In this document: positions 1,419-56,094 of the stretch, piece after piece
Layout of the letters: each line of letters starts with the position of its first letter
Position numbering within the stretch: the stretch's first letter is position 1
Source: Guillardia theta CCMP2712
Taxonomy: Eukaryota; Protista; Cryptophyta
Assembly (NCBI RefSeq): GCF_000315625.1
Contig: NW_005434578.1
Span: forward strand, 153,018 to 217,017
Length of the DNA: 64,000 bases
Direction of reading: 5' to 3'
The notes under the pieces: model-generated
Told to the model about the DNA's origin: nothing
Database searches by the model: none
What the model saw: the letters and a program-made list of their open reading frames with translations, nothing else
Translations under genes and position numbers: made by a program

Positions 1419-3294
1419 TTAGTGATCAGCAAAAAGTTTCAAATCTACAGCGCTGAGGGATAGGCGGGGAAAACGAATCGGTTCCAAGAAGGAAGGGATA
1501 GAGAAAGAAGTTGACATGAGAAGCAATGGAGGGGAGGGCAGATGGACGAGAAGGTTTGGGGAGGACACACAAGGCAACTCACTCTGCTGACGCATGATAG
1601 TTCGACGCGTTTGTTTCAGCTGCCCCTGATATGCAGATGGATGAGTTGCGAGCTGATCGAAGAGCTTTTTCACCTCCCCGATAGAGATCTTCGTTGTCAA
1701 GAGCGCGATCTTCTTCTTCAGATTGATCAACTGATCCCCCTAAACACGAATGGGTGAGGATCGGGTGGAAGCCCCAGGGGGATTCAAGCCTGTGCGATGT
1801 ACTCGATTACAGGAGGAATATTGTTCGATGTCTCCAGCTGCTTCTGTAGAGTCTGCATATACCGATCAGACTAGACAGCCCAAAATCGCATCACCTTCTG
1901 CACATTCTGCTCCTTCACCAGCATCAATTGCACCTGCTCATGTGCGTCAACTATCTCATAAAGCATTCATGTCAATGTTTCGACATGTTCAAGCTCAGTG
2001 CGAATGTTTTCCATCTGCTCTTTCTTGGTCTGTTCGGTCTTGACCAGCCAATCCGTTGACTGCAATTCTCTTGTCATCGACATACGACAGACGACAATCG
2101 TAGGGAGTGGTGAAAACAATCGACCTGTTGTGTTTGCGACAACTCTTCCTTGATCTTATTCAGCCTCCATTGCGCTCGTCCAAGAGTAGCTTTCAGCGAA
2201 AGGGCCTGGAGAAAACAAGCCTTCAGCATTTGCAAAGTCCGAGCTCCATCCATTGCGCATTTGACTGCTACTAGTACAAGAGTTTGGCTGCTACATACTT
2301 CAGCATTCCTTAGGTCAATGTTTTCTAGCAGCTGTTTGTTCTCGATCTGGAGCTGTTCAAAATCTTGGCAGCAAGTCAGCGGCAAGGAATAGCAGTTGGA
2401 AGGCTCCTACCAATCTTTTTCAAACTCTCTCCGGCTTCCTCCTTGTGTTTGAGATCCTCCTCGCTCTTGGACAAAGTGGCTCTGAGACCACGATTCTTCG
2501 TCTCCAACTTGTCTAGCTCGTTGTCTCTCCTCCTCAATGTATCCTGTCACAAACCTTCAATGTCCATCGCAAGAGACCGAGAGCACGGTTCACCTCAAGG
2601 TATGCTATCAGTTTGTTCTGATTCACAGGCAAACCATCCTTGAGAAAGTTCTGCCTGAACTGAATTTGCTCCATCATAGTGTTGGTAATGATCTCTTCCT
2701 GGGTGTCTATCTGAGCCTGCAGTGAGTCGACCAGCTTGTCAAACTTCGCCCGGATCTGATTGAGCTGCTTGCGCTGCTCGTCCGACACTCCGTTTGCCAG
2801 TGTCAGCTTCTCGTTGATAGTCAGCGACAGAGGAACTGCCCTTGCGCTGGCATCCTTCTCCTTCTTCTTCTGCTTGCCAGTTGTCGGCGCATCCACCTCG
2901 ACCCTTCCAGCCGGCTCTGTGAGATTCAGCGAAGCGATGACCTGCATTAACCTACAACAAATAAGGAAAATGAGAAGTCAGTCAGCGCCAGTGATGGTCC
3001 ACTCAGGTGACTCAGGCATTGAGTCACTGTCACTGACAAGTGGCCAGCCGTCACTGCCGCGGCTCGCCACCAAGGCAGTACCGTACTGCCGTGAACTGGA
3101 GCGGCCAATCCCCGGCCAGTACGGTGAGGTGTGACAGATCGGATACCGTACGGTACTGGCCCGTATACCGTACAGCCTGTGGGCTGACAGGAGCAACGGG
3201 AGGAGCAAGTGACTTACATGTGGTTCTCAGCCTCGAGCGCTCGCGTCTCTCTCTGCACCAGCTCGAGATCCGCCACGCTCGCCTCCCCTGCCAT
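1419..3294 (-). CDS. CCDC113: Ciliary coiled-coil protein, CCDC113/CFAP263 (DUF4201 family)
   Basis: Spliced product contains LTINEKLTLA and EEAGESLKKI/DFEQLQIENKQLLENIDLRNAE, typical of DUF4201; exon 1 MAGEASVADLELVQRETRALEAENH (3294-3218); intron 1 2952-3217; 3' end approximate. Confidence 0.8.
2975..3190. repeat. Micro-hairpin-rich tract in CCDC113 intron 1
   Basis: ggcagtac-c-gtactgcc (3074-3090), taccgtacggta palindrome, tgactca...tgagtca. Confidence 0.75.
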
Positions 3295-4800: not shown

Positions 4801-5730
4801 TTTGAACAATAACCGTACTGGCAAGTTGTCCGAAGTGCAGCGGCTGAGTAGTACTGACACAGATCTGAATTGGACTGTGTCTCCGCGGCACTGAGTGTGA
4901 GTTGACGGTGAGCCTGACTATCATATCGTGGCTCAGCTCCGGGACTCGAGTCAGTGCGGCCGCAGCCCAGGCTGACCGACTGAGCGGCCTCGGAGCCCCG
5001 GGCCCGAGAGCGCCGCCGGCCGCCAGCCGCGGCCGGGGCCCGCCGTACGGTCGCCGCCGGTGGCAGTGAGTCACGGCGGCGCCGCAACTCATCAACGGTT
5101 TACGTTGCCAAGTTCGGACCGTACCGTCCGGCGGCGTACCGTCCGACTCGGTGCCCGGCCAGTGACGCCGGGCGGCCCATACTGATACCGAGTAATACCG
5201 TCACTGCTGAGGGCGGCCCGCCCAGGCCTCACTCAGCCAGGCTCCGAGCCCGGCCGGAGCGGCTACCGTACGTGACCGTACGGGTAGTACCGTCGGAGGC
5301 TAGCGCCTAGGCTCCGGGAGGCCGATTGCCGCGCCATGATTGCCGCCGGCCGCGCAGTGACTCGCCGTCACGGTCCTCGGCGGCGTACGGTCACTGGGCG
5401 GCCGCCGTGATGATGTTCAAGTACTTAGTACGCCGGTACTATATCTCAGGGCCGAATTTTGAGTAACTTACTTAGCCCGGGGGCCGACTCTGTGACCGTA
5501 TCGGACGGTGACTCGGTTGACCGTACTTGAACGGCCGGGCCGGGCCGGGCCGGGCCAGTCACACCGTACTGTGTGTTTTAACAATAATGTACGGTCGCCG
5601 GATGTTTCTTTATGAACATTTAACCAGCACAGCTTTACTCATTTTTAACTTAACTTTGAGTAGACTACTCAAAGTTAAGTTTTCAACAAGTGTCCCTCGC
5701 CGGACTCCGGGAGTAAAGCAGTCAAAACTT
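4801..5730. repeat. Micro-hairpin/palindrome-rich intergenic tract
   Basis: Dense gactcgagtc, tgcggccgca, ccgtacgg, (ggccg)n, and a perfect 17-bp-arm hairpin at 5647-5681. Confidence 0.8.
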
Positions 5731-6592
5731 GACAAGTTGACAGACGCCGAGCCAGCAGCTACCTGGTTGAGTGAAATGATTCGTACACCTCGAGATATCA
5801 TCGGGTTTATCCGGCTCTTTCGAACATACCGAGGTGACAGTCACGTTACCTCAGGTTCGTGAGAATCGGAATGAGTGTTTGTACCATAAACTTTTAGTTA
5901 CCCTGGGGAGAGCAGCGTTGATATGCCGCGCAAACCCTGATCCGCTGTAACTGTCAATGTAACTGATGTCACGTGGCCCATACAACTGCATCGCCCCGAC
6001 GGAGTGCGGATAATTTTTTTATTGACCAGAGCGAAAACAAATCTTTTCGTTGCGGTTTCGGACATCAACGGCCAAAAGAAGAGTTATCGTTTTTCCTCCG
6101 GTCAGCTCGGAGCTTTAGGAGAGTTTCACGCGTGGCCCAGAGGTCCAGATTCCCAGATCCCGTGGTACTAATTTTACTCAATAAATTTGAAATAATCTGG
6201 ACCAATGGCATAAAAGAGAATTTTATTCCCAAAGGTCCAGTTTTTGAACCGTTGTGGTCGAGTTTGTCAGCAGGGCAGTTGCACCCCCACAGGGGCCCAC
6301 CGATAGAATCAGGGGGTGGGGTACTGACCGGACCGTAAATGTGCCTAGCCCAAGCTCCATTCTATGCCGCAATACATATGATGGTATTCAGAAAATATCT
6401 AACCCTTCCTATACCAACCAATGTAAACGACAGGCTCGGGCGGAAAAGACCGTGACACGATCGTGACAATTTCACATTTAAAAATATGTATATTTGAAAT
6501 ATATTTCAAACAGGTTCTGGGAATCTGGACCTCTGGGCCACGCGTGAAACGCTCCTTAATAGGAACCTCCGCTAGTTTCGCGGCACAGAGCT

Positions 6593-25296: not shown

Positions 25297-28200
25297 CTAC
25301 CGTCGCGTTCTGGGATCCATACCAAACACCTGCGCTTCGATCGCTTCATTGCCGCGGGTCCACCCGTACCTTGCAAGAATGCCTTTATTTTCCACATTCT
25401 TCACGCTGAAGCTGTTGAGAATCTCCTCGGGAACGACAAACACTATCTCCACCTTCCAGCCTTCCTCCTTCCCAATGCCCAAAAGTTGCAGGCACTTTGC
25501 CATGTATCGCAGTTTGAGGTCATGCGACTGCCTAGTCGTTACCTGCACAAAGCGCACAAATTTTTCACTCCAGTCAACAATCACTGCATCGTAGCCCCCC
25601 TGATTCCATTTCAATGGCTTCAGGCACACCCTTGCTACTTTTGTCTTTTCCTGCAGCTTATGGATTTGCATAGCTTCCAGCCTTATCACGTTACATCTTT
25701 TCCAATCGTCGACTGTCACGGACCTCGTGGTAAGCTGCAGCCCTGCCCCTCGTATCCGAGCAAAGAACAGCATCTCAAACAACCAACCCCGAAGTGTCGG
25801 ATTCCCAGTTGCGTCAACGAGTTCTTCAATCTTCCTCACAAACGTTTCTCCAAGCCTCTGTGCTAGCTCCATGGAAACAAACCTGCTGACAAGCGTCCAG
25901 TGCACCTCGTCTCCGACACGATACTTCCCATGCAGGCGATTCACAGCATTGTTTGCACGCTCTCCCATCCCCATGTCAAACAGGGACGCAAAATCAGGAA
26001 CAGCCTCTATCCCGTCACGGAGTTCTTGGATCGCTTCATCTGTCCTACGTTCAAACATATATCGGCATGAGCCTCCTACAATCTGATACTTTGACTCGAT
26101 TTCTCTCGACCTTCTCTCTTGTTCTGTCTCATCCATGCTTCCCTCGCCTTCATCCATGCTTCCCTCTTCTTCATCCAAGCTCCATTTCATCACATCAGCC
26201 ACACTCTTATAGAACGCGTCGTACCTACAGGCTTCCAGATACTCTTCCATTGTCCACGAATACACCATCATTTCTTCGACCTTCTCATTCGCATCTTGCT
26301 CGGAACTCTTCTTTGCTCGAGAGCTCATCGACGTTGTGATAACAAGCCGCCGATTCTCCAGTTCACGATGAACCCAATACAGGCAAGCACTCAGCACAAA
26401 TCCATGTGCTTGCTCCCCCTGTCGGTAACCATCTATAGACACCAAAGTCTTCTTCCCGCTCGGTGCCCGTTCTCTGAGAAATTTCGGTATCCAAGCCCCC
26501 GCATTGTCGGCAGGCATCTCACATTTTCTCAATACGCCATCATCAACCTGTAAGAATTCGACAATTCCCCACTTCCACAGCCGAAAGCATATCACCCTCC
26601 ATCCCTCCTCCATGCCTCGCGATTGCATGAAGGACATCGTCGTCGTCGTCTTCCCCGTCCCCGGAGGCCCTAGAATCCAACCCAGACACCCCGCCTTGCA
26701 CACCCGGTCGTCAAGGAAACGCCACTGCTCATTGAAGGAATCTCGGCAGTACAGCACACGCACCCCTGCTTGTGACGAGCTGATTGGATCAAACAGCGAT
26801 CGATCGAGAAAGAAGAGTTTGTTCGCCTCCCTGTGCCCCACCAGATCACGACTCAAGGTTTTTTCTGTCCAAATTGCGCTTTCTGCCTCTTCCTCCCGGA
26901 CCTCGGCCCTGTGTTTGTCAAGCACGAGCTCCTTCCTCTCAAGCTGACTGGTCAGCCGTTGCTTTTCTGCCGGGTCTTGGCACATCTCGATCTTGTGCTC
27001 GAGCTCCTTCTTCTCGAGCGTGAGCTTGTGCTCGAGCTCCTTCCTCTCGAGCTTGACCGTGTGCTCGAGCTCCTTCCTCTCAAGCTGACTGGTCAGCCGT
27101 TGCTTTTCTGCCGGGTCTTGGCACATCTCGATCTTGTGCTCGAGCTCCTTCCTCTCGAGCGTGAGCTTGTGCTCGAGCTCCTTCCTCTCGAGCTGACTGG
27201 TCAGCCGTTGCTTGTCTACCGGGTCTTGGCACATCTCGATCTTGTGCTCGAGCTCCTTCCTCTCGAGCTTGACCGTGTGCTCGAGCTCCTTCCTCTCAAG
27301 CTGACTGGTCAGCCGTTGCTTTTCTGCCGGGTCTTGGCACATCTCGATCTTGTGCTCGAGCTCCTTCCTCTCAAGCTGACTGGTCAGCCGTTGCTTTTCT
27401 GCCGGGTCTTGGCACATCTCGATCTTGTGCTCGAGCTCCTTCCTCTCGAGCGTGAGCTTGTGCTCGAGCTCCTTCCTCTCGAGCTTGACCGTGTGCTCGA
27501 GCTCCTTCCTCTCAAGCTGACTGGTCAGCCGTTGCTTGTCTACCGGGTCTTGGCACATCTCGATCTTGTGCTCGAGCTCCTTCCTCTCGAGCGTGAGCTT
27601 GTGCTCGAGCTCCTTCCTCTCAAGCTGACTGGTCAGCCGTTGCTTTTCTGCCGGGTCTTGGCACATCTCGATCTTGTGCTCGAGCTCCTTCCTCTCGAGC
27701 TTGACCGTGTGCTCGAGCTCCTTCCTCTCAAGCTGACTGGTCAGCCGTTGCTTGTCTACCGGGTCTTGGCACATCTCGATCTTGTGCTCGAGCTCCTTCC
27801 TCTCGAGCGTGAGCTTGTGCTCGAGCTCCTTCCTCTCAAGCTGACTGGTCAGCCGTTGCTTTTCTGCCGGGTCTTGGCACATCTCGATCCGGCGCTGGAT
27901 TTGTGAGATAGATTCCACCAGTATGCTCATTTCGTCTGTCTTGCTCTCCTCTTTCTCTTCATCTCGCCTGTATTGCTGTCTTGTTCCTTTTGGTCTTGCT
28001 TTCTCCTTTGACTTTTCATCCTGTCTGTCTTGCTGCATTGCTCTGCTTTTTCTTGCTCTCTTACTTTTGATCTTGTCGCGCTGCTTTTTCAATGTTGCGG
28101 TCTGGAAGACACAGTGAGAGGAACGCAGGAGAGTCAGGTTGTGAACAAAAGCATCAGGATTTGGGCATAAGCATGAGGAAGATGGGAAAGGAAATGAGAG

Positions 28201-28506
28201 TGGAGAAAGCAACGGTGACAGAAGAAACAGTGGAGTTGCAACGGTAAAGCGCGCAAGGCAGTAAACCAAGAAATTGACAAGTGAATTACAGAAAACTACA
28301 CTCACAGAGTTCAATTCAACTTTCTTCTCTGCCTCGTCCTCTCCGCCTTTCAAGCGTAGAGATAGAGGAGATCCAGTGCCTTGGCGCGACTTACGGCTCT
28401 TGAGCTTAGCATACTTTCCTGTCTCAACGGATCGAAGCGCAGATTCGAAGGATAGGAAGAGCTGGAGGATGAGCAAAATTTCCAGAAAAAAATTCAATCC
28501 CCTCAT
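25297..28506 (-). CDS. Crinkler/RHS-type effector-like protein: signal peptide, LRLKGG, helical repeats, P-loop NTPase, restriction-endonuclease-fold domain
   Basis: LYCR, Walker A GWILGPPGTGKTT (~26647-26680), Walker B-like VSIDG, YSWTMEEY, GGSCRYMF, GWLFEMLFF, PLKWNQGGYDAV...FVQVT..SHDLKL; probable 204-nt in-frame intron 28102-28305. Confidence 0.82.
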   Translation of the reverse strand: MRGLNFFLEILLILQLFLSFESALRSVETGKYAKLKSRKSRQGTGSPLSLRLKGGEDEAEKKVELNSVSVVFCNSLVNFLVYCLARFTVATPLFLLSPLLSPLSFPFPSSSCLCPNPDAFVHNLTLLRSSHCVFQTATLKKQRDKIKSKRARKSRAMQQDRQDEKSKEKARPKGTRQQYRRDEEKEESKTDEMSILVESISQIQRRIEMCQDPAEKQRLTSQLERKELEHKLTLERKELEHKIEMCQDPVDKQRLTSQLERKELEHTVKLERKELEHKIEMCQDPAEKQRLTSQLERKELEHKLTLERKELEHKIEMCQDPVDKQRLTSQLERKELEHTVKLERKELEHKLTLERKELEHKIEMCQDPAEKQRLTSQLERKELEHKIEMCQDPAEKQRLTSQLERKELEHTVKLERKELEHKIEMCQDPVDKQRLTSQLERKELEHKLTLERKELEHKIEMCQDPAEKQRLTSQLERKELEHTVKLERKELEHKLTLEKKELEHKIEMCQDPAEKQRLTSQLERKELVLDKHRAEVREEEAESAIWTEKTLSRDLVGHREANKLFFLDRSLFDPISSSQAGVRVLYCRDSFNEQWRFLDDRVCKAGCLGWILGPPGTGKTTTTMSFMQSRGMEEGWRVICFRLWKWGIVEFLQVDDGVLRKCEMPADNAGAWIPKFLRERAPSGKKTLVSIDGYRQGEQAHGFVLSACLYWVHRELENRRLVITTSMSSRAKKSSEQDANEKVEEMMVYSWTMEEYLEACRYDAFYKSVADVMKWSLDEEEGSMDEGEGSMDETEQERRSREIESKYQIVGGSCRYMFERRTDEAIQELRDGIEAVPDFASLFDMGMGERANNAVNRLHGKYRVGDEVHWTLVSRFVSMELAQRLGETFVRKIEELVDATGNPTLRGWLFEMLFFARIRGAGLQLTTRSVTVDDWKRCNVIRLEAMQIHKLQEKTKVARVCLKPLKWNQGGYDAVIVDWSEKFVRFVQVTTRQSHDLKLRYMAKCLQLLGIGKEEGWKVEIVFVVPEEILNSFSVKNVENKGILARYGWTRGNEAIEAQVFGMDPRTRR
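26925..27895 (-). repeat. Coding modular tandem array (75-nt and 33-nt units) inside the Crinkler-like gene
   Basis: 9 x KIEMCQDP(AE/VD)KQRLTSQLERKELEH interleaved with 5 x KLTLE(R/K)KELEH and 4 x TVKLERKELEH. Confidence 0.95.
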
Positions 28507-29570: not shown

Positions 29571-29969
29571 ATTGGTGATTCAATGAAGTAGAATAACTCT
29601 CTCCTCCGTACCTGGTTTCCTTCCTTCCTTCCTTCCTTCTTTGCTCAGTTTTCCCGGGTTCCGATTCCTTCGTTCCTCCTGGCTTCCTCCCCTTCACTGA
29701 TCCATATGCCTGCCATCAGCCGCTGCGCCGCCTCCGCGAAGTCATCGGGCATGGGGACCTTTTCTGGCGCATTGAATGACTACCACCGTAAGTGCTCAGG
29801 TGCCGGGTGCTGTTTGACCACGCGTTCGAATCCTAAGGGCAATCGAAATCGGATTGCTTTTCAGCGTCCGATCAATTCCACTACCAGAATGCCCAAGACT
29901 TTTATGATTCTCGCCCACTCCTGAAACCCGACTACCTACCCTGACTTCATCTCTTGTGAAACTTGAACA

Positions 29970-30940
29970 TCAGCGGCGGGTGGCCCGGGTGCAGAGCCTG
30001 GTGATGCCACGGATACTAGCCTGAGGGCCGTCGAGACTCGGAGCTCAGTGGCCCAGCCCACGGGAATTGCTCACTGTCAGCTGAAAAGGGGATCAGCCTG
30101 ATACAAAAATCCTTGTGACGTGATCGGACACTGCGGCTCCGACTCAGCGGCCGGGCGCCGCCGGGCCCGGGGCCTACTAGGCTAGGCTACTTGCAGCGCC
30201 GCCGGGCGAAGTTTAGTACGGATGCGGCGGTCACTGCGGCGCCGGGCGTAGGCTCCCGCACAGGCCCGCCTCAGAGCTGTGGGACTTCAAGCCGCTTCAA
30301 CCGTATGTTGCCATGCATTATCCGCCCTCCGGTCCGGGAATACTTAACCCGGTTCCCTTTCGATAGGCGGCGCACCGAGATGCGCCCTTCACACGGAGAC
30401 GGTTCCCCTATCAACTAGTATCTCCGAGTTAGGACCGACTAACTTAACCCATCATGTCCAATCACTTATCACCGTGGCACGGTAAGGCGGCGGCGGGGCG
30501 GACTCGACTCGCCGGACTCGGAGTCGCCGAGTCGCCGGGGAGTCCCCGGCCGGGAGCCTCCGCTTCAAGCAAGGCTTTGAAAGTTTACTCAAACGGTTGA
30601 GTATGTCACAGCGCCGGCGGGCACTGCCGCGCATCCCGGCCGGGCGTCCGGCGATGATGCCCGGCGCTGATCGGACCCACCGGTGACCGGCGTGAACTCC
30701 GGGACCGTGATGATCATATCACGCCGGTCCGCCGCCGTCGGATTGAAGTCGTCACTGACTGAGACTGGCGCGGCGGCCCCGCCGGCCATGGGGCAGAGAC
30801 GTGACCGTACCGTCACTGTCACGGACGGTCGGACCGTACTACGTGACCGGCCCGGCCGGGTCACGGCGCCCGCCCGGGTCCCGGGTGCCGCGTGACGGTG
30901 CCGCCCGGGCCGCAGACGGTGCGGCGCGCCCTCAGTGGCA
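29970..30940. repeat. Micro-hairpin/palindrome-rich tract surrounding and interrupting the rRNA fragment
   Basis: gccgggga-g-tccccggc (30534-30550), gactcggagtc, ccggtgaccgg, gtcactgac, cggcgccg. Confidence 0.78.
30310..30605 (-). pseudogene. Degenerate LSU (28S) rRNA fragment interrupted by small insertions
   Basis: The + strand resembles the reverse complement of conserved eukaryotic LSU: gggaat(ac)ttaacccggttccctttcgatagg ... ttcccctatc ... ttaggaccgactaac ... ccat..gtccaa ... cttca..tttgaaagtt..ctca..tgagtat (recalled consensus GGGAATATTAACCCGATTCCCTTTCGA, TTAGGATCGACTAACCCATGTCCAA). Confidence 0.8.
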
Positions 30941-31436
30941 GACTCAGGCGGAGGCGAGCCTGCTTCAGATTGCCTACCCCTCCCTTGGATCCGACGGCGA
31001 ACAACCACCCCACCCATGGGATCAAGGCGCAAGGGTACTACCGTGATAGGGAATGGCGGGAAGGAGGGATCAGAATGGAGGAGGGGATTGAATGAAATAT
31101 GCGCGAGTTGAAACAGATATGAGATGGATCTGATCATCATGAACGCACAGAAGATTGATACGTGAGCTAGGCAGGAGCAGGATGAATGTAAAGGAGGAGG
31201 AGGAGGAGGTAGTCGTACTGCTCGGCTTTCGACATACGTTGGAGTTGATGGGACAGGATCTATCAGACACATGCCCCTTGATGCTGATGCGCTCATGCAA
31301 CCCAGAACCTCTTGACCCCACCACTCTCCTTGCATGCTGAGAAAGCATGAGAGGGTCGCACTGCCATGGCGCGAACTGAATTGACCATCATCGCAGACCA
31401 CGAGGAGGAGTGAGGCGCAGGAAGCGGAATGAGCAG

Positions 31437-34035
31437 ATGAACCGGGCGATATCAACACCTTCAGGTAACAGAAGAGATCACCGCTCCCTTCCTCTGCTCT
31501 TGCTTGCTCTCTGACTCTTTTCGTCGCAGCTGCCCACAGGAGCAGGCACACAGCAGAGGAGGACAAGGTTGCGGCATGGACAGCGCATGTGCGGAAGTCC
31601 AAAGCGTGACAGGATTGGGCCTGACCTGTCGCAGGCGCATCAGTTATGGACGAGATCGAAGGCTGCTCACAAGCACAGAGACGCATCTCTGAACAACATG
31701 CGAGGAGAACTGGGCAAGGAGGTATGCTGCCTGCTGTCGTATGGGCAGGTTCTGACAGGCTGATAGGTGACGGAGGCGGAGGAGCATCAGAGGAAGCTGG
31801 CGAGGTGGAGCTAGAGGTTGAATTGCGATAGGGAGTTAGCTGACATGCTTCTCTTGCTCCCAGCCAAAGGAAGGAGGAAGCTGCTTTGCTCATGGGCCAG
31901 CTATCGCAAGTTCGGCAGAACGTGGATAGTTTGCGGTCGATGATCCAGGCGCGAGGAAGAGGGCCCGAGTACATCGAGAGGTTGCGGGGAACGATGGACA
32001 GCATTGAAAACGAGATCTATCTGGTGAGGAATCAGGAGCAGGAGCATTTGGAGTTCCTCACCAGCGAGGAGAAAACCCTCAATGCCGAGTTGGCGGCGCT
32101 AGAGAGGTCGATCCAGGAATGGGCGACCTCGGACGGGGATAACCGTGTAAGACCCTCCACAGCAGGAGCCTCTTTGTCCTCCAAGCAGGAAGCCATGCCG
32201 GTGCAGAGCAAGATAGGAAGGATGCTGAGCCAACCCCTGCTCCCGCCCGAGGTCGTTGCTGTCGATCGGATCCTCAAGGAGGAAGGAGGGAGTACAGGAG
32301 GCTGGGACGACGCGGATCACGAGAGATTCTTGCGGTACCGGACTCAGTTCAAAGGCCAGCCGCACATCTACTGCGCTAAGACGGCAGATGACCTCCCCGA
32401 CCATGACCTTGCATCTGTCGAGAGGCACGAGCTGTGGTACACAAGGTACCTGACGCTGCTAGAGAAGAAGCGTGAGGCCATCAGGTCATGGAGGACGAAC
32501 AGGCAGCACGAGCAGGAAGAGCAGCGCACCAACACAACCGTGACCAAGGAGGAGGCGCCTTCTCGCCGTCCCCAGTCGGCCAAGAGCTCAAGCAGGGATG
32601 CTGATGTGTCGAGAGAGGAAGTGAAGGAGAAGTTACAGAAGTGGAAGGAGAGCAAGGAGAACGAGAGGCTGCAGAAGCAGGAGGAGGTGATGTAGCAGAT
32701 GCTGCTGTGTGTGCTTGCTGACATGAGTCATAGGAGGCCAAGGCAGAGAGGGAGCGGGCAGAACGGGAGAAGTTGAGGAAGGAAAAGGAACGGCTGGAGA
32801 AGGTGATGAGAGTGGAGAACTACAAAAAGAGCAAGAAGGTCAGTTGCGATCTCACAAAACGTCTGAGTGTAAATGATGACGACGATTTGATCGCAGGCGG
32901 AGGAAGAGGCGAAGAAGAGAGAGGAAGAGTTTCAGCAAGAGCAGAACAAGTCCAAGGTACCCCCCTCCATCCTCTCCGAAGTTCATTTGGTGTTCTGACC
33001 ATCTAAACAGATTTCTGCCGAGCAGCTGGAGCGGATCAGAGTCAGGAACAAGAAGGTTGGCAGCTTCACTCTCCTCCCCCTCCATCCCTGACATGTCGGA
33101 ACCAGCAAACAGAAGAGCATATCAACCTGATCCGCAGGAAGGAGGAGCAAGAGCGGATCAAGGTCTTCCTCCTACCCTTGCTCTTGCTCCCCTCCTTGTC
33201 TCACCGGCTGCTGCAGACGCAGAGGATGGAAGCTCTTCTTGAGCACGTCGATGCCCCCAAGATTGATCGAGATCCCAACAGGCTCGTCGCTCCCACCACT
33301 GCCAGGTATCCCTCTTGCTCCCTTCCCCCTTCATACCTCCTCCTTCCCTCCCCTTTGCCTTATTCCTCCTCCCCCTCCTTCCTACTCCTACATCCTCCTC
33401 CTCCTCCTTCACAACAAGATTCCATCTGATGATCTGGCGTGAGAGCATTGAAACAAACACTGAGGCCCTCAAAATCCTGCATCAAGTCCAGCAGACACAG
33501 ATACGGAAATTCTTCTTGGAGTGGAGTGTCAAAGTTGTTCATCGCAGAATCATAGTAAGCAGTGTCCATTCTATTCCGCTCTTCTCTCTGCTTACTCTGA
33601 TTGCAGANNNNNNNNNNNNNNNNNNNNNNNNNNNNNNNNNNNNNNNNNNNNNNNNNNNNNNNNNNNNNNNNNNNNNNNNNNNNNNNNNNNNNNNNNNNNN
33701 NNNNNNNCCTCCTCCTCCCTCCCTCCCTCCCTCCCTCCCTCCCTCCCTCCCTCCCCTCCCTCCCTCCCTCCCTCCGCCCCCCCCCCCCCCTAACCCACCC
33801 TCCTACCACCGCCTGCTCCTCTCCCTCCTGTGTGTAACCGCCCCCCCCTCGCCCCTTGCGTGTCTTCCTCCACTATCATGCTGTGTTGGTTGAGCTGCTG
33901 GCTGTCAGCATGGCGAAGTCGGAGCTGGAGTCACCGGACGAGAAGAACACACGAGGATACTACTCCATCATGAGACCCAACACAGTCATGCACGTTGCTG
34001 CTCGGGCGACCCCGACATGGCGGTCGGGGATGTGA
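31437..34035 (+). CDS. CCDC112: CCDC112-family coiled-coil protein (centriolar satellite/cilium)
   Basis: LTSEEKTLNAEL, LPPEVVAVDRILKEEGGSTGGWDDADHERFL, VERHELWYTRYLTLLEKKREAIRSWR, DRDPNRLVAPT, C-terminal RATPTWRSGM*; spans gap 33608-33707; start approximate. Confidence 0.82.
33608..33707. other. Assembly gap (100 N)
   Basis: N run. Confidence 1.
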
Positions 34036-39378: not shown

Positions 39379-41730
39379 TTACTTGAGATCAGCACGAGGA
39401 GAAGGAGCGGGTGACCTGATAGGAGAAGAGACCTCTTTATCGCCCGCACGTTCCTCCTTTTCCTCCTCCTTCTCCTTCTGCTCCCTCTCCAGCCCAGACA
39501 CCAACCCTCCTTTCCTCTCTGCTTCTCCCTCCCTCCCCTCCCCTCCCTCCCCCTCCTCCTTGTTTTGCAGATGAAACGAGAAGAAGCTCATCATCCTCGA
39601 CGCTCTCTGCTCGCTTGTCCTCTGCAGCGTATTCCGGACGAGCAGCATGCGCGACGAGTGACTCGACTCCAGCTTCATGGCCCCGTCCACCCTGCTGACC
39701 TCGTGCTGAACGATCTCCCTCGCCAGCTCCTCCGTCGCCCTCCTCCTCTCCTCCTCCAGCTTCGCTGCCTCCTTCCTAGCAAGGCTGAGAGCCTTCCCCG
39801 TAGCCTCTGCCTCCTCCTCCTTTCTCCGGTGGGCTCGCTGGAGGTTCTTGTGCTCTTCCTGTAAGCCCTTCAAGGCTCCTGCTTTATCCTCTGCCTCCTG
39901 CTTCCACCGCTTCCTCTCTTCCTCCTCGCTCCTCAGCGAGTTTCGTAGAACAGCAACGTTAGCACAGACCATGTCAAGCTCCTCTGACAGCTCGGCTTCC
40001 TTCTTCTTCCTCTCCTCCACCTCCTCCTCCATCTTCCTGACGGAGGTCGAGAGCCGCAGAACCTCTTCCTCCGCCTCCTTCCCCGTCAGCTTCAGTCGAT
40101 CGATCATCTCGTTCATCAGCTTCTCAGTCCTCTCCTTCTCTGCCCGCAACCGATCCAACTCCTGCTGCTGCAGTGCTGCCTGCCTTGCCGCCTCCTGCTC
40201 CAGGTGTGTGATAGTCTCCAGAGCCCTCGTCCTCTCCATCAGCAGCTCCTCCTTCTCCTTCCCTTCCTCCTCCAGCTGCAGCCTGACAGACTTCAGCTCC
40301 TCGTCTATCTTCCCGTTCACCCGGCTCAACGTTGCATGCCGCACGCTCAAGTCATGGAGGCTCTTGGAGGCAGTTTGTGCCTCGTTCCTCGCAGCGTACA
40401 ACTCGGAGGTCAGAGCTTTCTTCTCGGAAAGATGCTTGCTCCTCGTCTGCTCCCGCTCCTCCGACATCTCCTTGTTCTCTCCCTCCAAACGCTCCAAGTC
40501 TCCTCTCAGCACCCCAGTCTCTTCCTCCAGCTCCCTCACCCTGCTCGACAGCCCTGCCACAGCCTGCTCCAGCTGCCTTATAGTCATCAGCTGCTCAGAT
40601 ATCTCCGCCTCCGCCTTGGCTGCCGCCGCGATCCTCTCCGCATGCGCCTTGTTGCTCATGTGGTGGGCGAACGCAATCTCTTCGTTGACGGTCTTGACCC
40701 TCCGGTCAAGGATCGTTTTCTCCCGGTCCAGGTCGGCTATCCTCCTATCCTTTTCCTCCATCATCTCACTGATCAGATCGTGGTTCTCCGCGTCCAGCGC
40801 TTCTCCTGTCAGTGTGCTGAACACCTGCCGGGCAGCGTCACGGCTCGTCTGATCCTTGCAGCAACGACAGAGAGTAGCAGGGGAAAATAGGAGCGGGCAG
40901 AGGCAGAGGGAGAGAGTGCGAGAGGGGGAGAGGGAGGAAGATTGAGTGGGAGAGGGAGAGGTAGAGTAACAGAGCAAAAAAGAGAAGCAAAGAATCGAAG
41001 CCCGCCCCCCCCCCCCCCCCCCTTCGCGCAACAGCAGGCCCGGCACACACCTGAGAGATTTGAAGTACAAGTTCCCTCCTGTGCTCCTTTTCCCTGACGC
41101 CTTCGATCGCCTGCCGTGCGATCGTTCCAAACCCGAAGGAGAAGGCATACAGACCGAGATACAACTTCTCGATCGTCTCCTCTCGCATCCCCGTTTTCCT
41201 GAGTTGACCATGATCGAGACCTGCCGCGGACAGCAGGCTCCTCCCCTCCTCCTTCCATGTCGGCAGGACCGTCTCCTCCACGCTCTGCAGCAGGTTGTAT
41301 GCAGTCGTGGTGGACTTGATCAGATCGGAGTTCCTCAGCTCCAGCAGCTCGTTCAGAACTGCCTCCCACGTGCTCAGCCCCAGCGACACGGTCGGTCGTG
41401 CATGCCGCTCCTCCTCCAGCATGACGGTGGTGCTGTTGTGCTTGTCCTGGTCCAGTGAAGACGGATCGCCCTCATCAGACGCCTTCCTCCTTACCATCAT
41501 GGCACACAAGGTCTAACCGCTGAACAAACCCGTTCACACGAGGCGTCTCATTCACACAGCATTAGCCATGCACCGCGGCATATTCCACCAAGAGATACAT
41601 CCATGCAGTCTGTATCGGCTAGCTCTCTCCTCAGTCTCTGTATCCTGCCCTCTCCTCTGTCCTCCTCCTCCTCCTCCCTTCCTCCCCTCAGCTCCTCTAG
41701 GCTGCGCCGCAAGGCCCATTGCGGGAGCAA
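39379..41730 (-). CDS. Large coiled-coil protein, 5' part
   Basis: GLDHGQLRKTGMREETIEKLYLGLYAFSFGF region spliced to a >400-aa coiled coil (39570-40825); start near 41719-41730. Confidence 0.7.
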
Positions 41731-42027
41731 GCCACCAACGGCTCTTATTCCCGTTACGGAAAAATAACGGGCAAACCCGGCAAGGATCGGGGAAACTACG
41801 AACTTGCTTGCAGTTGGCCGAATGGAGAGGGTCAGGACCTTTGTAATATCTACTATAGCCTCTATTATAATAATGATAACCTTCTACCCATGGGTCTCTA
41901 CATCAATTCGCCCCCTTTCTTAGCTCTTGTTACCTCTGCTCCTCCCTTCCCAGCAAACCTCCCCGCCCTCCTAGCTCGTTCCTGGTCACCCACCGGCCTT
42001 CCCTCCGATCTCCAACCCTTGCTCAAC

Positions 42028-43815
42028 ATGTGCCATGATCAAGAGAAGAACCAGGCGAACGCATGGAAGGAGTGCGACTCTGACGGAGATGTCCTGATAG
42101 CAGAAGATGGCTTCGAGAGTGCGGGAACCGAGGTTGTGCAGCAGGCGCAAGAGCCGCACGGCTCCCCAGTCAAGAAGAGGCGGACCAACACCCAGGCACA
42201 GCAGCATGACACCAGCAGTGACGAGATGCTCGACGAAACGGCAGACCCTGAAGACGATAAGACGGACATCAAGAGCCCCGAGGACCTCCCTCAGGTCTCC
42301 AGAGACCAGCAAGAGCTCGTCAGCAGCAGCTCCATCAAACAGGAGGCAGAGGCAGAGTTGGAGGAGCTGAGCAACAAGTGCAACGAGCTGAGAGAGAGCG
42401 TGAAGGCGCTGGAGCAGAAGAAGACAGAGAAAGAGCTCAGCCTGGCCTCCCTGGCTAAGCAGCACAAAGCCACGCACACCGAGCTTGACAACCTCAGGCA
42501 AGAGCTCAATGAAAAGGAGGAGAGAGGTGAGCAGCTCTCGGAGGAGCTCCTTCAAAGGGAGGGCAGTCTGCAGGCATGCAAGCAGGAGAGGGATGTCGTG
42601 GTGAAGGAGCTTACGGCGCTGCGGGAGGAGGCAGAGAGGGGAAGGCAGGAACTACAAGACATCAGCGAACTCAGGAGAGAGTATCAAGCTATCAAGGATG
42701 CACTTACTGCTGGCAAGACTAGCAAGCAGGCGGCAGAGGCAGAGTTGGAGGAGCTGAGCAACAAGTGCAACGAGCTGAGAGAGAGCGTGAAGGCGCTGGA
42801 GCAGAAGAAGACAGAGAAAGAGCTCAGCCTGGCCTCCCTGGCTAAGCAGCACAAAGCCACGCACACCGAGCTTGACAACCTCAGGCAAGAGCTCAATGAA
42901 AAGGAGGAGAGAGGTGAGCAGCTCTCGGAGGAGCTCCTTCAAAGGGAGGGCAGTCTGCAGGCATGCAAGCAGGAGAGGGATGTCGTGGTGAAGGAGCTTA
43001 CGGCGCTGCGGGAGGAGGCAGAGAGGGGAAGGCAGGAACTACAAGACATCAGCGAACTCAGGAGAGAGTATCAAGCTATCAAGGATGCACTTACTGCTGG
43101 CAAGACTAGCAAGCAGGCGGCAGAGGCAGAGTTGGAGGAGCTGAGCAACAAGTGCAACGAGCTGAGAGAGAGCGTGAAGGCGCTGGAGCAGAAGAAGACA
43201 GAGAAAGAGCTCAGCCTGGCCTCCCTGGCTAAGCAGCACAAAGCCACGCACACCGAGCTTGACAACCTCAGGCAAGAGCTCAATGAAAAGGAGGAGAGAG
43301 GTGAGCAGCTCTCGGAGGAGCTCCTTCAAAGGGAGGGCAGTCTGCAGGCATGCAAGCAGGAGAGGGATGTCGTGGTGAAGGAGCTTACGGCGCTGCGGGA
43401 GGAGGCAGAGAGGGGAAGGCAGGAACGTGAAAATCTCGACACAAATCTTGAGCGCTTGCGAGTAGAGCAGCAGACGTTGACGTCGGAGCTGACGAGAATG
43501 ACGACTGAGCGAACGACAGTCGGTGTAGAGCTGACACTCGCGATCGACATGAGGGCCCAGGCAGAGGCAGAGTTGGAGGAGCTGAGAAGCAAGTGCGAGG
43601 AGCTGAGAGAGAGCGTTAAGAGGCTGGAGCAGCAGCAGGAGAGCAAGAAAACGAATGCCAAGGCACTTGACCGGGAGCAAGAGACACTGGAGGCTATGAA
43701 GAGTCAGCTCAAGAACCTGCAGGAGGAATACGACACGCTCAAGAGGAGCAGCGAGGCTGGCAATGGGTCTGCTTTCTCTAGATTCTTCCTCTTTGGTGGC
43801 AGGTCAACCCAGTGA
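42028..43815 (+). CDS. Intronless coiled-coil protein with 129-aa internal repeats
   Basis: ATG at 42028, NLS-like PVKKRR, acidic N-terminus, heptad repeats. Confidence 0.8.
   Translation: MCHDQEKNQANAWKECDSDGDVLIAEDGFESAGTEVVQQAQEPHGSPVKKRRTNTQAQQHDTSSDEMLDETADPEDDKTDIKSPEDLPQVSRDQQELVSSSSIKQEAEAELEELSNKCNELRESVKALEQKKTEKELSLASLAKQHKATHTELDNLRQELNEKEERGEQLSEELLQREGSLQACKQERDVVVKELTALREEAERGRQELQDISELRREYQAIKDALTAGKTSKQAAEAELEELSNKCNELRESVKALEQKKTEKELSLASLAKQHKATHTELDNLRQELNEKEERGEQLSEELLQREGSLQACKQERDVVVKELTALREEAERGRQELQDISELRREYQAIKDALTAGKTSKQAAEAELEELSNKCNELRESVKALEQKKTEKELSLASLAKQHKATHTELDNLRQELNEKEERGEQLSEELLQREGSLQACKQERDVVVKELTALREEAERGRQERENLDTNLERLRVEQQTLTSELTRMTTERTTVGVELTLAIDMRAQAEAELEELRSKCEELRESVKRLEQQQESKKTNAKALDREQETLEAMKSQLKNLQEEYDTLKRSSEAGNGSAFSRFFLFGGRSTQ
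42345..43426 (+). repeat. 387-bp apparently perfect coding tandem repeat, ~2.8 copies
   Basis: Unit starts at 42346, 42733 and 43120 (period 387). Confidence 0.95.
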
Positions 43816-52294: not shown

Positions 52295-54146
52295 CCTTCC
52301 ACACACCCCTCCCATTAGTTTCCTGCATACCCCTCCTTGCTACACCCCCACCCTTCATTTTGTACCCCCACCCCCTTTTTACGATGTTTTCAGAGTACAG
52401 AAGCCGATTTGTTGAGCTTACCATTCCTGATCACCGGTCATAATTCATAAAGTAGACCCCCTGACCCCACACAAATTTCCTCGTACCCCTTCATTTTCTA
52501 CCTGACTACCCCCTATCGTAGTCATTCCTGGGCGTGTTGACCCACAAAATTTTTAGTATTTTAAATGTTAATATCAATATTGTAAAATATTTTATTCTCT
52601 ACCATATTGCTTCCTTTTCAATACAGAAGTTAGTTAAATATGCAAGTTTTTTTTTTGACGAGTACGTTCATCACCCCCCCTAGGTAAAGGGATTTTGACT
52701 ACAGGATGACCGGTAGTTGAAATTATTAAAAGAACGTAGTTGAAAGGGAGTGTTTTCAGATGTTCCTCCATCAGCAAAGGGGGTGGTACAAACCAGGGGT
52801 AATACCCTTGCAACTAGGAACCTTTGATTTTTGTGGCCCAACTACCCCACCTACCTCAAATCCTCCCTATCAAAAGTGGATATAGGGGGTACTGGGGTCC
52901 AAATGACGACCCCCCACCCTAGGATGAGGGCATATGAAATAAGGCCTCTTGTCTACTTTTTTGTGCACTCCCGCAAGGCAATGAAGTTTTACTAATAAAA
53001 GTCAATCTCAGTGACGGCGTCACTACCGGCCGTCAGCACTCGCCGAGTCTGCCGGGCCGCCCCTCCAGGACCAAAGTTAAGTTAACTTTGAGTAAAGATT
53101 TAAGTTAAATCACGAGTGCCAGTCTACAGTGACTAGGTCTGATCCGGTGCAGCTTCCGCCGGCCCGGATCAAATGGCTGGGGCGGGCTTGTCAGGTCTCT
53201 CCCCTTCCATTTGAGTAAAAATCTCTCCCTGCTCTTCATGCGTGATGTGGTGCCCCCAAGCAGCAAGGGACCCTTGCTAGCCCATGCTGATGGGCCCAGA
53301 CGAAGGCGGCGGCAGCAGCGATGATGACGATGATGATGACGATGAGATGAAAATGTCCATTCCCATTCCCATTCCCATTCCCATTCCCATTCCCATTCCC
53401 ATTCCTATGTCAGTGTCAATGTCGAGGATGGTGATGACGAGGATGATGCTGATGATGCCAGTGATGCTGATGCTCAATTGGGAGATTGTGGGGATTTCTT
53501 GATTGTGAGGATTACGAGAAGATCTTCTAACGGAGATGATGATGCAGATGCAGATGTTGATCTCATATCGAACATGAACTTGATGTTTAACATGGTGATG
53601 GAGAGGATGGTGATGATAATGGAGATGATGAATGTGGTGTAGATTGAGATGAAGGAAAGGCCAAGAGGATGAAGATGAATTCAGTGGCCGTAGTAGAATT
53701 GGTAGAAGGAGCGGATAAGATGTCGATGACGGAGATGGTTACCGTAATGAATGTGACGATAGAGCTGTTGAATAAAGGACCAAGGTGTAGGAGGAGGAAG
53801 AGGAGGAGGAAGAGGAGGAGGAGAAGGAGGAGGAGAAGGAGGTGGTAGTGGAGGTGCAGTAGTAGCGGCGGCAGCAGCAGAAGCAGCAGGTGTAGGCGCT
53901 GTGCTGGGATATAGAACGAGCCATATCACTCTGTATAAATGTCAGTGTTGTTCGCTGTTTGGTCGAAAGAGGCAGGCGTTGCTTGTTTGTATTCCAAGTC
54001 AGACAATATTCCTCATGGTATATTGACTGACACTAGATGAATATTGAATGACACTAGATCGTTTATGTTCTCCGGGACCCCCCTCGTGTATTCCTCTTCA
54101 CTAACACACCGTGTCCAGGTTCCTTTGTAATAACAGGGCTGCTCAG

Positions 54147-54805: not shown

Positions 54806-55951
54806 TCATAGAACTTTGCTGCTGCTCACATTCTCACCGCCTGTTCTCGAAGCCAACCATTCTCCTGCTCCTGTCTTGTTCTCGATGGGCCCTGCCGGGT
54901 TCGCACTCAATGCCAACCATTGAGTGCTATACGCTGTGTACAGCAGTAACAAGTAGAGAGGAAAAGATCGCGGGGAGAGAGCGGCTTTCAAGGACCAGAG
55001 CCTCTGCAAGTCGACATGATCAGCATTGTACATAGCAAGAGACGCGACAATGAGAGAAAAGCTCATCCAGAAGCACGACTGGATCCGAGTCCCCATGAGA
55101 GCGTTCGCCAGCATTGCTGTCAGAAGGATCTCACACGAAGTGGCGAACGCCTTTGTTATCGCGCTGAAGTTCTTGAGCGTGTAGGCTGTGCACAGCCCCC
55201 CGCTGACCAGGAGAAAGACGATACACGCTATGCGCCATGTTACCCGCGTCATCCAATGCGCCGCCCCGCTCCACGAGAGCACAAGAGCGTTGAGCACCGA
55301 CGACATGGAGTAGAGCACGAAGTTCGAGCGGTTCATGCTGGAGCTCGTCGCAGGGCTGGCCTTCTTGAGGAGGAGCTCGTTGCAAACCGCCGCGAGGCTT
55401 GAGACGGTCGCCTGCAGCAGCACGAAGAGGAAGTGAGAGGTGCGAAAGGAGGAAAGAATGCCCCTCGATAGCTTGTCGCAGTCTATGTTTGCAAGCGCGC
55501 AGCCCAAGGTGAGGATGATCAGAGACGTCAGAACTCGCAGAGTGATGGCCTTGTTGAAGAGGATGGACCAGAAGAGAGCGGTGATGAGGATCTTGATATT
55601 CATGAGGATTGTGTAAGTTTGTGGCTCGTAGTTGGCCAAGTTCGAGAACGTCAGCAGGTTGCAAGCTGTGTACAGGAAGGCAGGAACGACCATCTTCCAG
55701 TCATGGTGCAGGAACGCATGATACAGCTGCTGCTGCAGCGGCTGCTTTTCCAGCCTACTCTCGATGGTGAACATGGCGAAGGAAACAGCAGCTTTGAGGA
55801 TCTCCGAAAGCAGCACGAGGGACGATGGTTCATAGTCGAAGCTCCTCCCCCGGGTCGTCTGCTTGATCAGGACTGCAAGGAGGCTGAAGATGAGGACGTA
55901 GAGTATGAGTGGCGCATACTTGCTCCCCGTACTCCCTCCCCCTCCTCCCAT
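54806..55951 (-). CDS. Nucleotide-sugar transporter, SLC35A family, intronless
   Basis: VLLSEILK, VPAFLYTACNLL, YTILMNIKILITALF, SSLAAVCNELLLK, AITKAFA; about 10 TM segments. Confidence 0.9.
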   Translation of the reverse strand: MGGGGGSTGSKYAPLILYVLIFSLLAVLIKQTTRGRSFDYEPSSLVLLSEILKAAVSFAMFTIESRLEKQPLQQQLYHAFLHHDWKMVVPAFLYTACNLLTFSNLANYEPQTYTILMNIKILITALFWSILFNKAITLRVLTSLIILTLGCALANIDCDKLSRGILSSFRTSHFLFVLLQATVSSLAAVCNELLLKKASPATSSSMNRSNFVLYSMSSVLNALVLSWSGAAHWMTRVTWRIACIVFLLVSGGLCTAYTLKNFSAITKAFATSCEILLTAMLANALMGTRIQSCFWMSFSLIVASLAMYNADHVDLQRLWSLKAALSPRSFPLYLLLLYTAYSTQWLALSANPAGPIENKTGAGEWLASRTGGENVSSSKVL

Positions 55952-56094
55952 CCCATCCCTTCCCATCCCTTCCCTTCCCTTCCCTGCCCTGCCCTGCCCT
56001 GCCCCACCTGCTCTCTATTCCTCCACGACGATTATTGCTACCCGTCCTTTCGACTGGTTTAGGACCCCACCCCTATAGAGGAAGAGTGCCACAA

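Follow-up and report, generated by a model that had tools for sequence, protein, structure and literature searches.

The GC-rich palindrome island at 30050-30950 of the window (the whole 64-kb stretch of Guillardia theta DNA that was analysed) holds an orphan piece of the organism's own LSU rDNA at 30304-30466 on the reverse strand, which lies outside the rDNA array and is a non-functional copy. Compared with its source, this fragment showed at least six insertions (27 nt) and neither deletions nor substitutions in approximately 136 nt of LSU sequence. The inserts are absent from functional rDNA and copy adjacent bases in direct or inverted orientation, the island sequence around it is polymorphic for small indels of a similar type, and the islands of the window carry a signature of odd palindromes. 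Overall, the favoured explanation, with a probability of about 0.7, was that template switching over short distances recurs in a fragile island on the promoter side of genes, with the late-captured rDNA acting as its recorder.

The fragment was identified with a eukaryotic LSU HMM that was built from 14 eukaryotic LSU segments of metagenome contigs, which were picked by a conserved motif and then aligned. The nhmmer search placed the match at 30466-30304 of the reverse strand (E=2.1e-16, envelope 30477-30289) and produced no other LSU match in the 64-kb window (128 kb searched). The best blastn match of the fragment was with L107 (62 nt at 92%), a genuine eukaryotic LSU with 2065 bits against Rfam RF02543 and a 5.8S upstream, and the fragment corresponds to approximately nt 1575-1686 of the LSU of L107. 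A multiple alignment of 12 diverse eukaryotic LSUs showed that the fragment is collinear with the LSU and that its GC-rich variable helix (GGGCGCA..TGCGCC) is normal LSU anatomy and does not count as an insert. A preliminary description made from the letters of this DNA had reported reverse-strand LSU motifs in the correct order with small inserts, and both the significant HMM match and the 12-LSU alignment confirmed it. Rfam missed the fragment both with the gathering threshold and with E≤10 because the inserts disrupt the covariance-model alignment. An LSU-motif scan of viral contigs produced one match, which was non-rRNA.

The loose ends of the rDNA contigs showed that the true LSU parts from the window just before 30304 and runs on differently beyond it, and the end of the fragment was therefore set at 30304. 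Nhmmer found no further LSU homology in the flanks of the fragment, including 30556-30610. With insertion-tolerant alignment, the reverse-strand stretch at 30250-30303, which ends with GGGAGCC, appeared as a possible rewritten continuation of the LSU; its score against the next 30 nt of true LSU was 18.9 (shuffles 15.4±1.5, P=0.004), a score that was equalled by 5% of other island segments. On the other side, possible upstream LSU-like text (TGAG..AACTTT..GAAG.GGAG) was seen at 30556-30603 of the reverse strand, where the local alignment of the upstream LSU segment ranked approximately 11th of 3162 window segments, and the anchored version of the insertion-tolerant alignment, run upstream through the palindrome block, did not reach significance (P=0.13-0.36). 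Both stretches may be heavier-rewritten edges of the LSU piece, and the earlier statement that LSU-like text resumes at 30556-30610 is thus suggestive only.

Contigs and reads of four public runs were placed on 29900-31100 at 80% likeness. The organism's own rDNA, in which nuclear and nucleomorph copies are pooled here, was recovered as short contigs of very high depth, with 1339-1562 in data set X1 (flanks 64-100) and 171 in X2 (flanks 8-21). These contigs had no substituted letters relative to the window at 30304-30443 and were without 1, 4, 10 and 4 nt that are present there. After removal of the inserted letters the window reads TTCCCCTATCTCTTAGG, which is universal LSU text. The alignment of the own-rDNA contig ended at 30443 with five letters left over and is therefore consistent with an absence of the ttaac insert; the absence of ttaac and of cat was established from the 12 reference LSUs, and the own-rDNA check is indirect for both. 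When the alignment to own rDNA proposed in the preliminary description was run, the four covered inserts were thus found to be absent from functional rDNA, and the other two were absent from the 12 LSUs. All inserts sat in columns without any indel among the 12 diverse eukaryotic LSUs. Written in the LSU sense, the extra letters were ATG, AGTTA (5 nt), CTCG, ACTAGTTGAT (10 nt), CGTC/CCGT (4 nt) and a single G.

RNA reads covered 30304-30398 only, and the letter at 30343 was missing from 21 of the 22 reads. These reads derive from rRNA, and no transcription of the locus itself was visible. Locus contigs carrying all inserts were recovered at single-copy depth in X1 (99.7) and X2 (21.2) and were also present in X5. 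The X5 contig, which came from a run labelled as a freshwater metagenome, combined the locus (30304-30763) with 220 nt of true LSU. This chimeric join probably arose via a 55-nt stretch common to the rDNA and the fragment, and it is a warning for de Bruijn assemblies at rDNA-derived fragments. The join aside, the contig was the reference version of the island, which suggests that the run contains the reference strain.

The letters of the five inserts given in the preliminary description (acgg, aactagtatc, cgag, ttaac and cat, on the forward strand) were exact, and a further forward-strand insert of one base, c at 30343 (G in the LSU sense), was added to them. This base was absent from the rDNA contigs of X1, X2 and X5 as well as from the RNA reads mentioned above. 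The 4-nt insert acgg at 30399-30402, absent from the X1 rDNA contig (depth 1339) and the 12 LSUs, was a direct copy of the ACGG found 2 nt upstream. The 10-nt insert aactagtatc at 30413-30422 was likewise absent from the rDNA contig, where the aligner split the 10-nt gap over 30405-30418 with no mismatches, and from the 12 LSUs. Its TATC end duplicates the preceding 4 nt and a palindrome ACTAGT lies inside it, with the remainder having no clear template; a single direct or reverse-complement copy of nearby ancestral sequence was considered for the whole insert and did not fit. The 4-nt insert cgag at 30425-30428 was absent from the rDNA contig (as 30424 and 30426-30428) and the 12 LSUs. It consists of a new centre C and the reverse complement of the adjacent CTC, by which the odd palindrome CTC-C-GAG is formed, and since its placement is unique the centre base belongs to the insertion. 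The last two inserts, both absent from the 12 eukaryotic LSUs, were the 5-nt ttaac at 30444-30448, a tandem copy of the preceding ctaac with one mismatch, and the 3-nt cat at 30453-30455, an exact tandem duplication.

An adjacency test that counts directly adjacent direct or inverted copies, with a centre of 0 or 1 nt and over all equivalent placements, showed that 22 inserted bases were explained by adjacent copying compared to 9.6 for random inserts (P≤5e-5), with a statistic that was designed after the data were seen. A looser k-mer test of templatedness produced P=0.02 at k=4 and a non-significant P=0.16 at k=5. Exact reverse complements of neighbouring sequence were found in the cgag insert and in a polymorphic 8-nt indel of the island (ACCGTG against the adjacent CACGGT), while cat, ttaac and acgg were direct copies and not the reverse-complement copies of the template-switch model. 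The earlier claim that every insert copies adjacent bases was thus upheld in part: it holds for cat, ttaac and cgag, and it does not hold for acgg and most of the 10-nt insert, which are not simple adjacent copies.

Comparison of the locus contigs showed that the island surrounding the fragment is polymorphic for indels. The 8-nt stretch caccgtgg at 30470-30477 (forward strand, as for the next two indels) was present in the window and X5 and missing from the X1 (depth 99.7) and X2 (21.2) contigs of the locus. When present, it produces a perfect 13-nt odd palindrome, ACCGTG-G-CACGGT, at 30471-30483; the indel contains the reverse-complement arm together with the centre G, which none of the equivalent placements moves outside it. 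A 3-nt repeat, CAC (CAC / GTG), borders the indel at 30470. A 6-nt indel, ccgggc at 30161-30166, was absent from X1 and X2 and when present gives an even palindrome in which CCGGG is directly followed by CCCGG. The third was a 3-nt indel at 30615-30617, where the window has CGG twice in tandem and X1 and X2 do not. Finally, X1 and X2 had 8 extra nt on the forward strand (GGTCCCGG) relative to the window at 30645-30646.

Between 30375 and 30705, the X1 and X2 locus contigs differed from the window and X5 by three indels and no substitution. Between 29900 and 30332 they differed from the window by the 6-nt indel, unlisted small gaps and one substitution site. This site, 30190, had three states (window C, X1 A, X2 G). 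Overall, at least four listed indels (6, 8, 3 and 8 nt) and one base substitution distinguished the data sets at 29900-30705; these indels were taken from contigs, so that alleles, strain differences and culture mutations are counted alike, and one of them could be polarised, weakly. In two cases, the 8-nt indel and the cgag insert, the inserted letters include the centre base of the odd palindrome that they create. The palindromes of the island come and go as discrete indels, and since indels of the same kind are polymorphic in the sequence flanking the fragment, the rewriting is local, insertion-driven and apparently continuing. Together with the absence of the inserts from rDNA, this bore out the view of the preliminary description that ordinary DNA is rewritten by local templated insertion. 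The indel spectrum of the fragment, with six insertions and no deletions or substitutions, was also not that of neutral pseudogenes.

The palindrome block described earlier at 30481-30555, including GCCGGGGA-G-TCCCCGGC at 30534-30550, was found to be real. The palindrome listing and the local-copy parse showed that it consists of overlapping odd palindromes and micro-duplications, such as GACTC GACTC and GAGTCGCC GAGTCGCC. Local copy phrases of at least 6 nt accounted for 45 of its 75 nt, compared to 8.6 expected from dinucleotide shuffles (z=5.3), and the parse required 21 phrases instead of the 25.8 in shuffles. The island itself (0.9 kb) lies between divergent genes, one at 25297-28506 on the reverse strand and an ORF starting near 31886 on the forward strand. 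It was present at single-copy depth and had no other matches within the 64-kb window, and its palindromes share no motif and are unrelated in sequence. The earlier statement that the tracts are not a repeat family was thus supported, and a dispersed palindromic repeat family was rejected on the search of the 64-kb window, the depth and the unrelated palindromes.

Islands of this type were found in the window at approximately 3000-3250, 5000-5750, 30050-30950 and 53000-53250, with a G+C content of 63%. Parsing of local direct and reverse-complement copies against dinucleotide shuffles gave z=-5 to -8 for three of the islands. For the 53000 island the phrase count was not significant (z=-1.3), and the long-phrase measure gave z=4.8. 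Control segments ranged from 0 to -3, and the LSU piece showed z=0.4, which is expected from its late arrival.

Palindromes with stems of at least 4 nt were counted in the islands by class. Those with a 1-nt centre showed the largest excess, with 66 observed and 11.8 expected (z=15), followed by even palindromes without a centre (23 against 12.4, z=3), while palindromes with a 2-nt loop (10 against 8.6, z=0.5) or a 3-nt loop (6 against 8.5, z=-0.9) were close to expectation. The centre base was G or C in 60 of the 66 odd palindromes (91%), compared to 63% G+C in the islands. In the rest of the window no palindrome class was enriched and the centre bases were evenly spread. The total excess of palindromes is partly circular because the islands were picked by palindrome density (loops of 0-1 nt); the contrast between odd and even palindromes and the identity of the centre base are free of this circularity. 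The lack of an excess of 2-3-nt loops speaks against snap-back within one molecule through a real loop and indicates opposite-strand copying after the addition of one base. The preliminary description had offered polymerase-theta or snap-back repair as one source of the tracts, and template switching or repair synthesis of this type would fit the data better than the excision footprints that it had also named.

Two further features were seen at the edges of the island. A low-complexity ORF of 471 aa at 30589-32004 on the reverse strand crosses the island and is probably no gene. The stretch at 29900-29962 had 10-20 times the depth of its neighbours in the DNA contigs, with other copies linking 29962 to 30053 via 38 different letters, and it resembles a dispersed repeat directly next to the island.

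In the favoured explanation, the island would recently have captured, in reverse orientation, approximately 136 nt of the central part of the organism's high-copy LSU rDNA, probably as filler at a break site. The island would be a hotspot of insertion-biased mutation that acts over a few bases. A neighbouring stretch re-copied in the same orientation would leave a micro-duplication, and a reverse-complement copy set behind one new base, nearly always G or C, would leave a perfect odd palindrome. Repeated rounds would convert ordinary DNA into palindrome tracts, and the LSU piece, having arrived late, would therefore still be readable and show the first few events. The events themselves are best read as short-range polymerase template switches during replication or break repair and would not be transposon footprints.

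The strongest competitor of recurrent template switching, with a much smaller probability, is a one-shot origin in which a slippery polymerase or reverse transcriptase, prone to template switching, made all inserts at once while it copied rDNA, or cDNA derived from rRNA, into a break, so that the piece would record its capture and not a continuing process. Six insertions next to zero substitutions in approximately 136 nt would also fit a single error-prone synthesis at capture, and templated and inverted insertions are known from break-repair synthesis (PMC11724301). However, the polymorphic indels of the same kind lie in flanking island sequence that is not rDNA, the whole island and the other islands bear the same signature in denser form, and the inserts are found at six separate sites with the sequence between them intact. 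Recurrent template switching was therefore preferred over a single error-prone capture.

Selection was considered improbable as the cause. The palindromes would in that case be kept as protein-binding or structure-forming promoter elements, and the inserts would be the retained fraction of ordinary indels. The islands do sit between divergent genes, and dimeric factors often bind to palindromes. However, no motif is common to the palindromes and direct micro-duplications without a palindrome are as common as inverted ones. An ordinary supply of mutations would also bring substitutions and deletions, of which the fragment has none.

Slightly less probable still are the stacked excision footprints of cut-and-paste transposons (hAT, CACTA or similar) that the preliminary description had suggested. 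The transposons would in this reading prefer promoter regions, and their target-site duplications together with hairpin-opening P-nucleotides would build the duplications and palindromes. The short filler flanked by direct duplications (TATC..TATC, CAT CAT), the palindromic additions and the position of the island on the 5' side of two genes would agree with such footprints. A hAT or CACTA footprint has a target-site duplication fixed at 8 bp or 3 bp with even P-nucleotide palindromes between the copies, whereas the duplications here are of variable length (3, 4 and 5 nt) and the palindromes belong to the odd class, with G or C added at the centre. At least six sites within 160 nt would each require an insertion and an excision, neither an element nor a terminal repeat was present nearby, and the island is unmatched elsewhere in the window. 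Excision footprints thus fit poorly. Finally, an error of assembly or sequencing in hairpin-forming DNA, or a fortuitous similarity to LSU, to which the Rfam miss and the X5 join (evidently made via shared words) could have pointed, has a negligible probability and was refuted by the read and contig comparison with own rDNA, given the nhmmer E=2e-16, the 100% own-rDNA identity outside the inserts at 30304-30443 and the recovery of the locus with its inserts in the independent DNA data sets X1, X2 and X5.

Among known processes, template-switch mutation or quasipalindrome mutagenesis (Ripley model; Löytynoja and Goldman 2017, PMC5453318; Mönttinen and Löytynoja 2022, PMC8794818) has in published cases produced scattered, mostly length-neutral replacements. 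The locus resembles it in that one event writes the reverse complement of the neighbouring bases and produces a perfect hairpin stem, and in that the ancestral state can be read from a reference copy, as in template-switch studies. Unlike in those cases, the events at the locus are pure insertions that are very dense and confined to discrete islands, with a stereotyped, newly added 1-nt G/C centre and direct micro-duplications beside the inverted ones. Templated and fold-back insertions at double-strand breaks (polymerase-theta end joining, SD-MMEJ and yeast fold-back inversions; PMC11724301; PMC5728401) are similarly short (about 3-30 nt), copied from the flanks in direct or inverted orientation and occasionally accompanied by return microhomology, for example CAC / GTG at the 8-nt indel. 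The yeast fold-backs use pre-existing inverted microhomology with a 41-nt loop (PMC11724301). Break-templated events occur at one junction and have loops of several nt or more, whereas the island has many sites and a loop of exactly 1 nt.

As with orphan rDNA, NUMT or NUPT filler, the fragment is a piece of abundant nucleic acid at an unrelated nuclear site, non-functional and usable as a molecular clock. Orphan rDNA and organelle-derived fragments normally decay by substitutions and deletions, whereas this LSU piece shows insertions only. Non-coding sequence full of short GC-rich palindromes is also found in green-algal organelle DNA, such as that of Volvox carteri, where the palindromic repeats are dispersed consensus copies and selfish elements (PMC2670323). 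In contrast to those repeats, the island is nuclear, unique and single-copy, and its palindromes are unrelated. No description of palindromic or hairpin islands in the nuclear genomes of Guillardia or other cryptophytes was found in the searchable literature.

Known cases of template switching and templated insertion are rare mutation events at scattered sites. Here, the functional rDNA and its stranded copy form a natural before-and-after pair that is identical base for base except for the insertions. This pair shows the process repeated within 160 nt without competing substitutions or deletions, and the fragment links the process to a sharp signature, the single added G/C centre, that fills islands beside genes. 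The de novo origin of hairpins, palindromes and possibly promoter elements, the existence of regional insertion-dominated mutation regimes in some genomes, and the enzyme behind the scar of one added G or C followed by copying back are now testable. A bolder and more doubtful extension is that the promoter-side GC islands of cryptophytes may form a genome compartment under continual rewriting by an activity that is dedicated to it or strongly localised. At a nick or break, this activity would first add a single G or C and afterwards make a backward copy of the neighbouring bases. If this is true, perfect odd palindromes would arise de novo far faster than base substitutions, and captured fragments such as the rDNA piece would be time-stamped recorders of the writing activity.

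Generally, the window is eukaryotic nuclear DNA of approximately 55% GC that is rich in microsatellites and has one N gap. tRNA and Rfam scans of the 64-kb window produced no matches. The N run (assembly gap) at approximately 33600-33700 is flanked by a CCTC/CCCT microsatellite. The gene at 25297-28506 on the reverse strand is an ORF of 1069 aa with a signal-peptide-like start that is transcribed away from the island; a coiled-coil repeat of 36 aa (108 nt) occurs in it approximately 8 times, and a weak P-loop NTPase match was seen. A 387-nt tandem repeat with 2.8 copies at 99% identity was found at 42336-43426, inside the ORF at 41719-43815. Finally, a nucleotide-sugar transporter was identified at 54806-55966, with its closest named relative in the cryptophyte Hanusia phi (77% identity).
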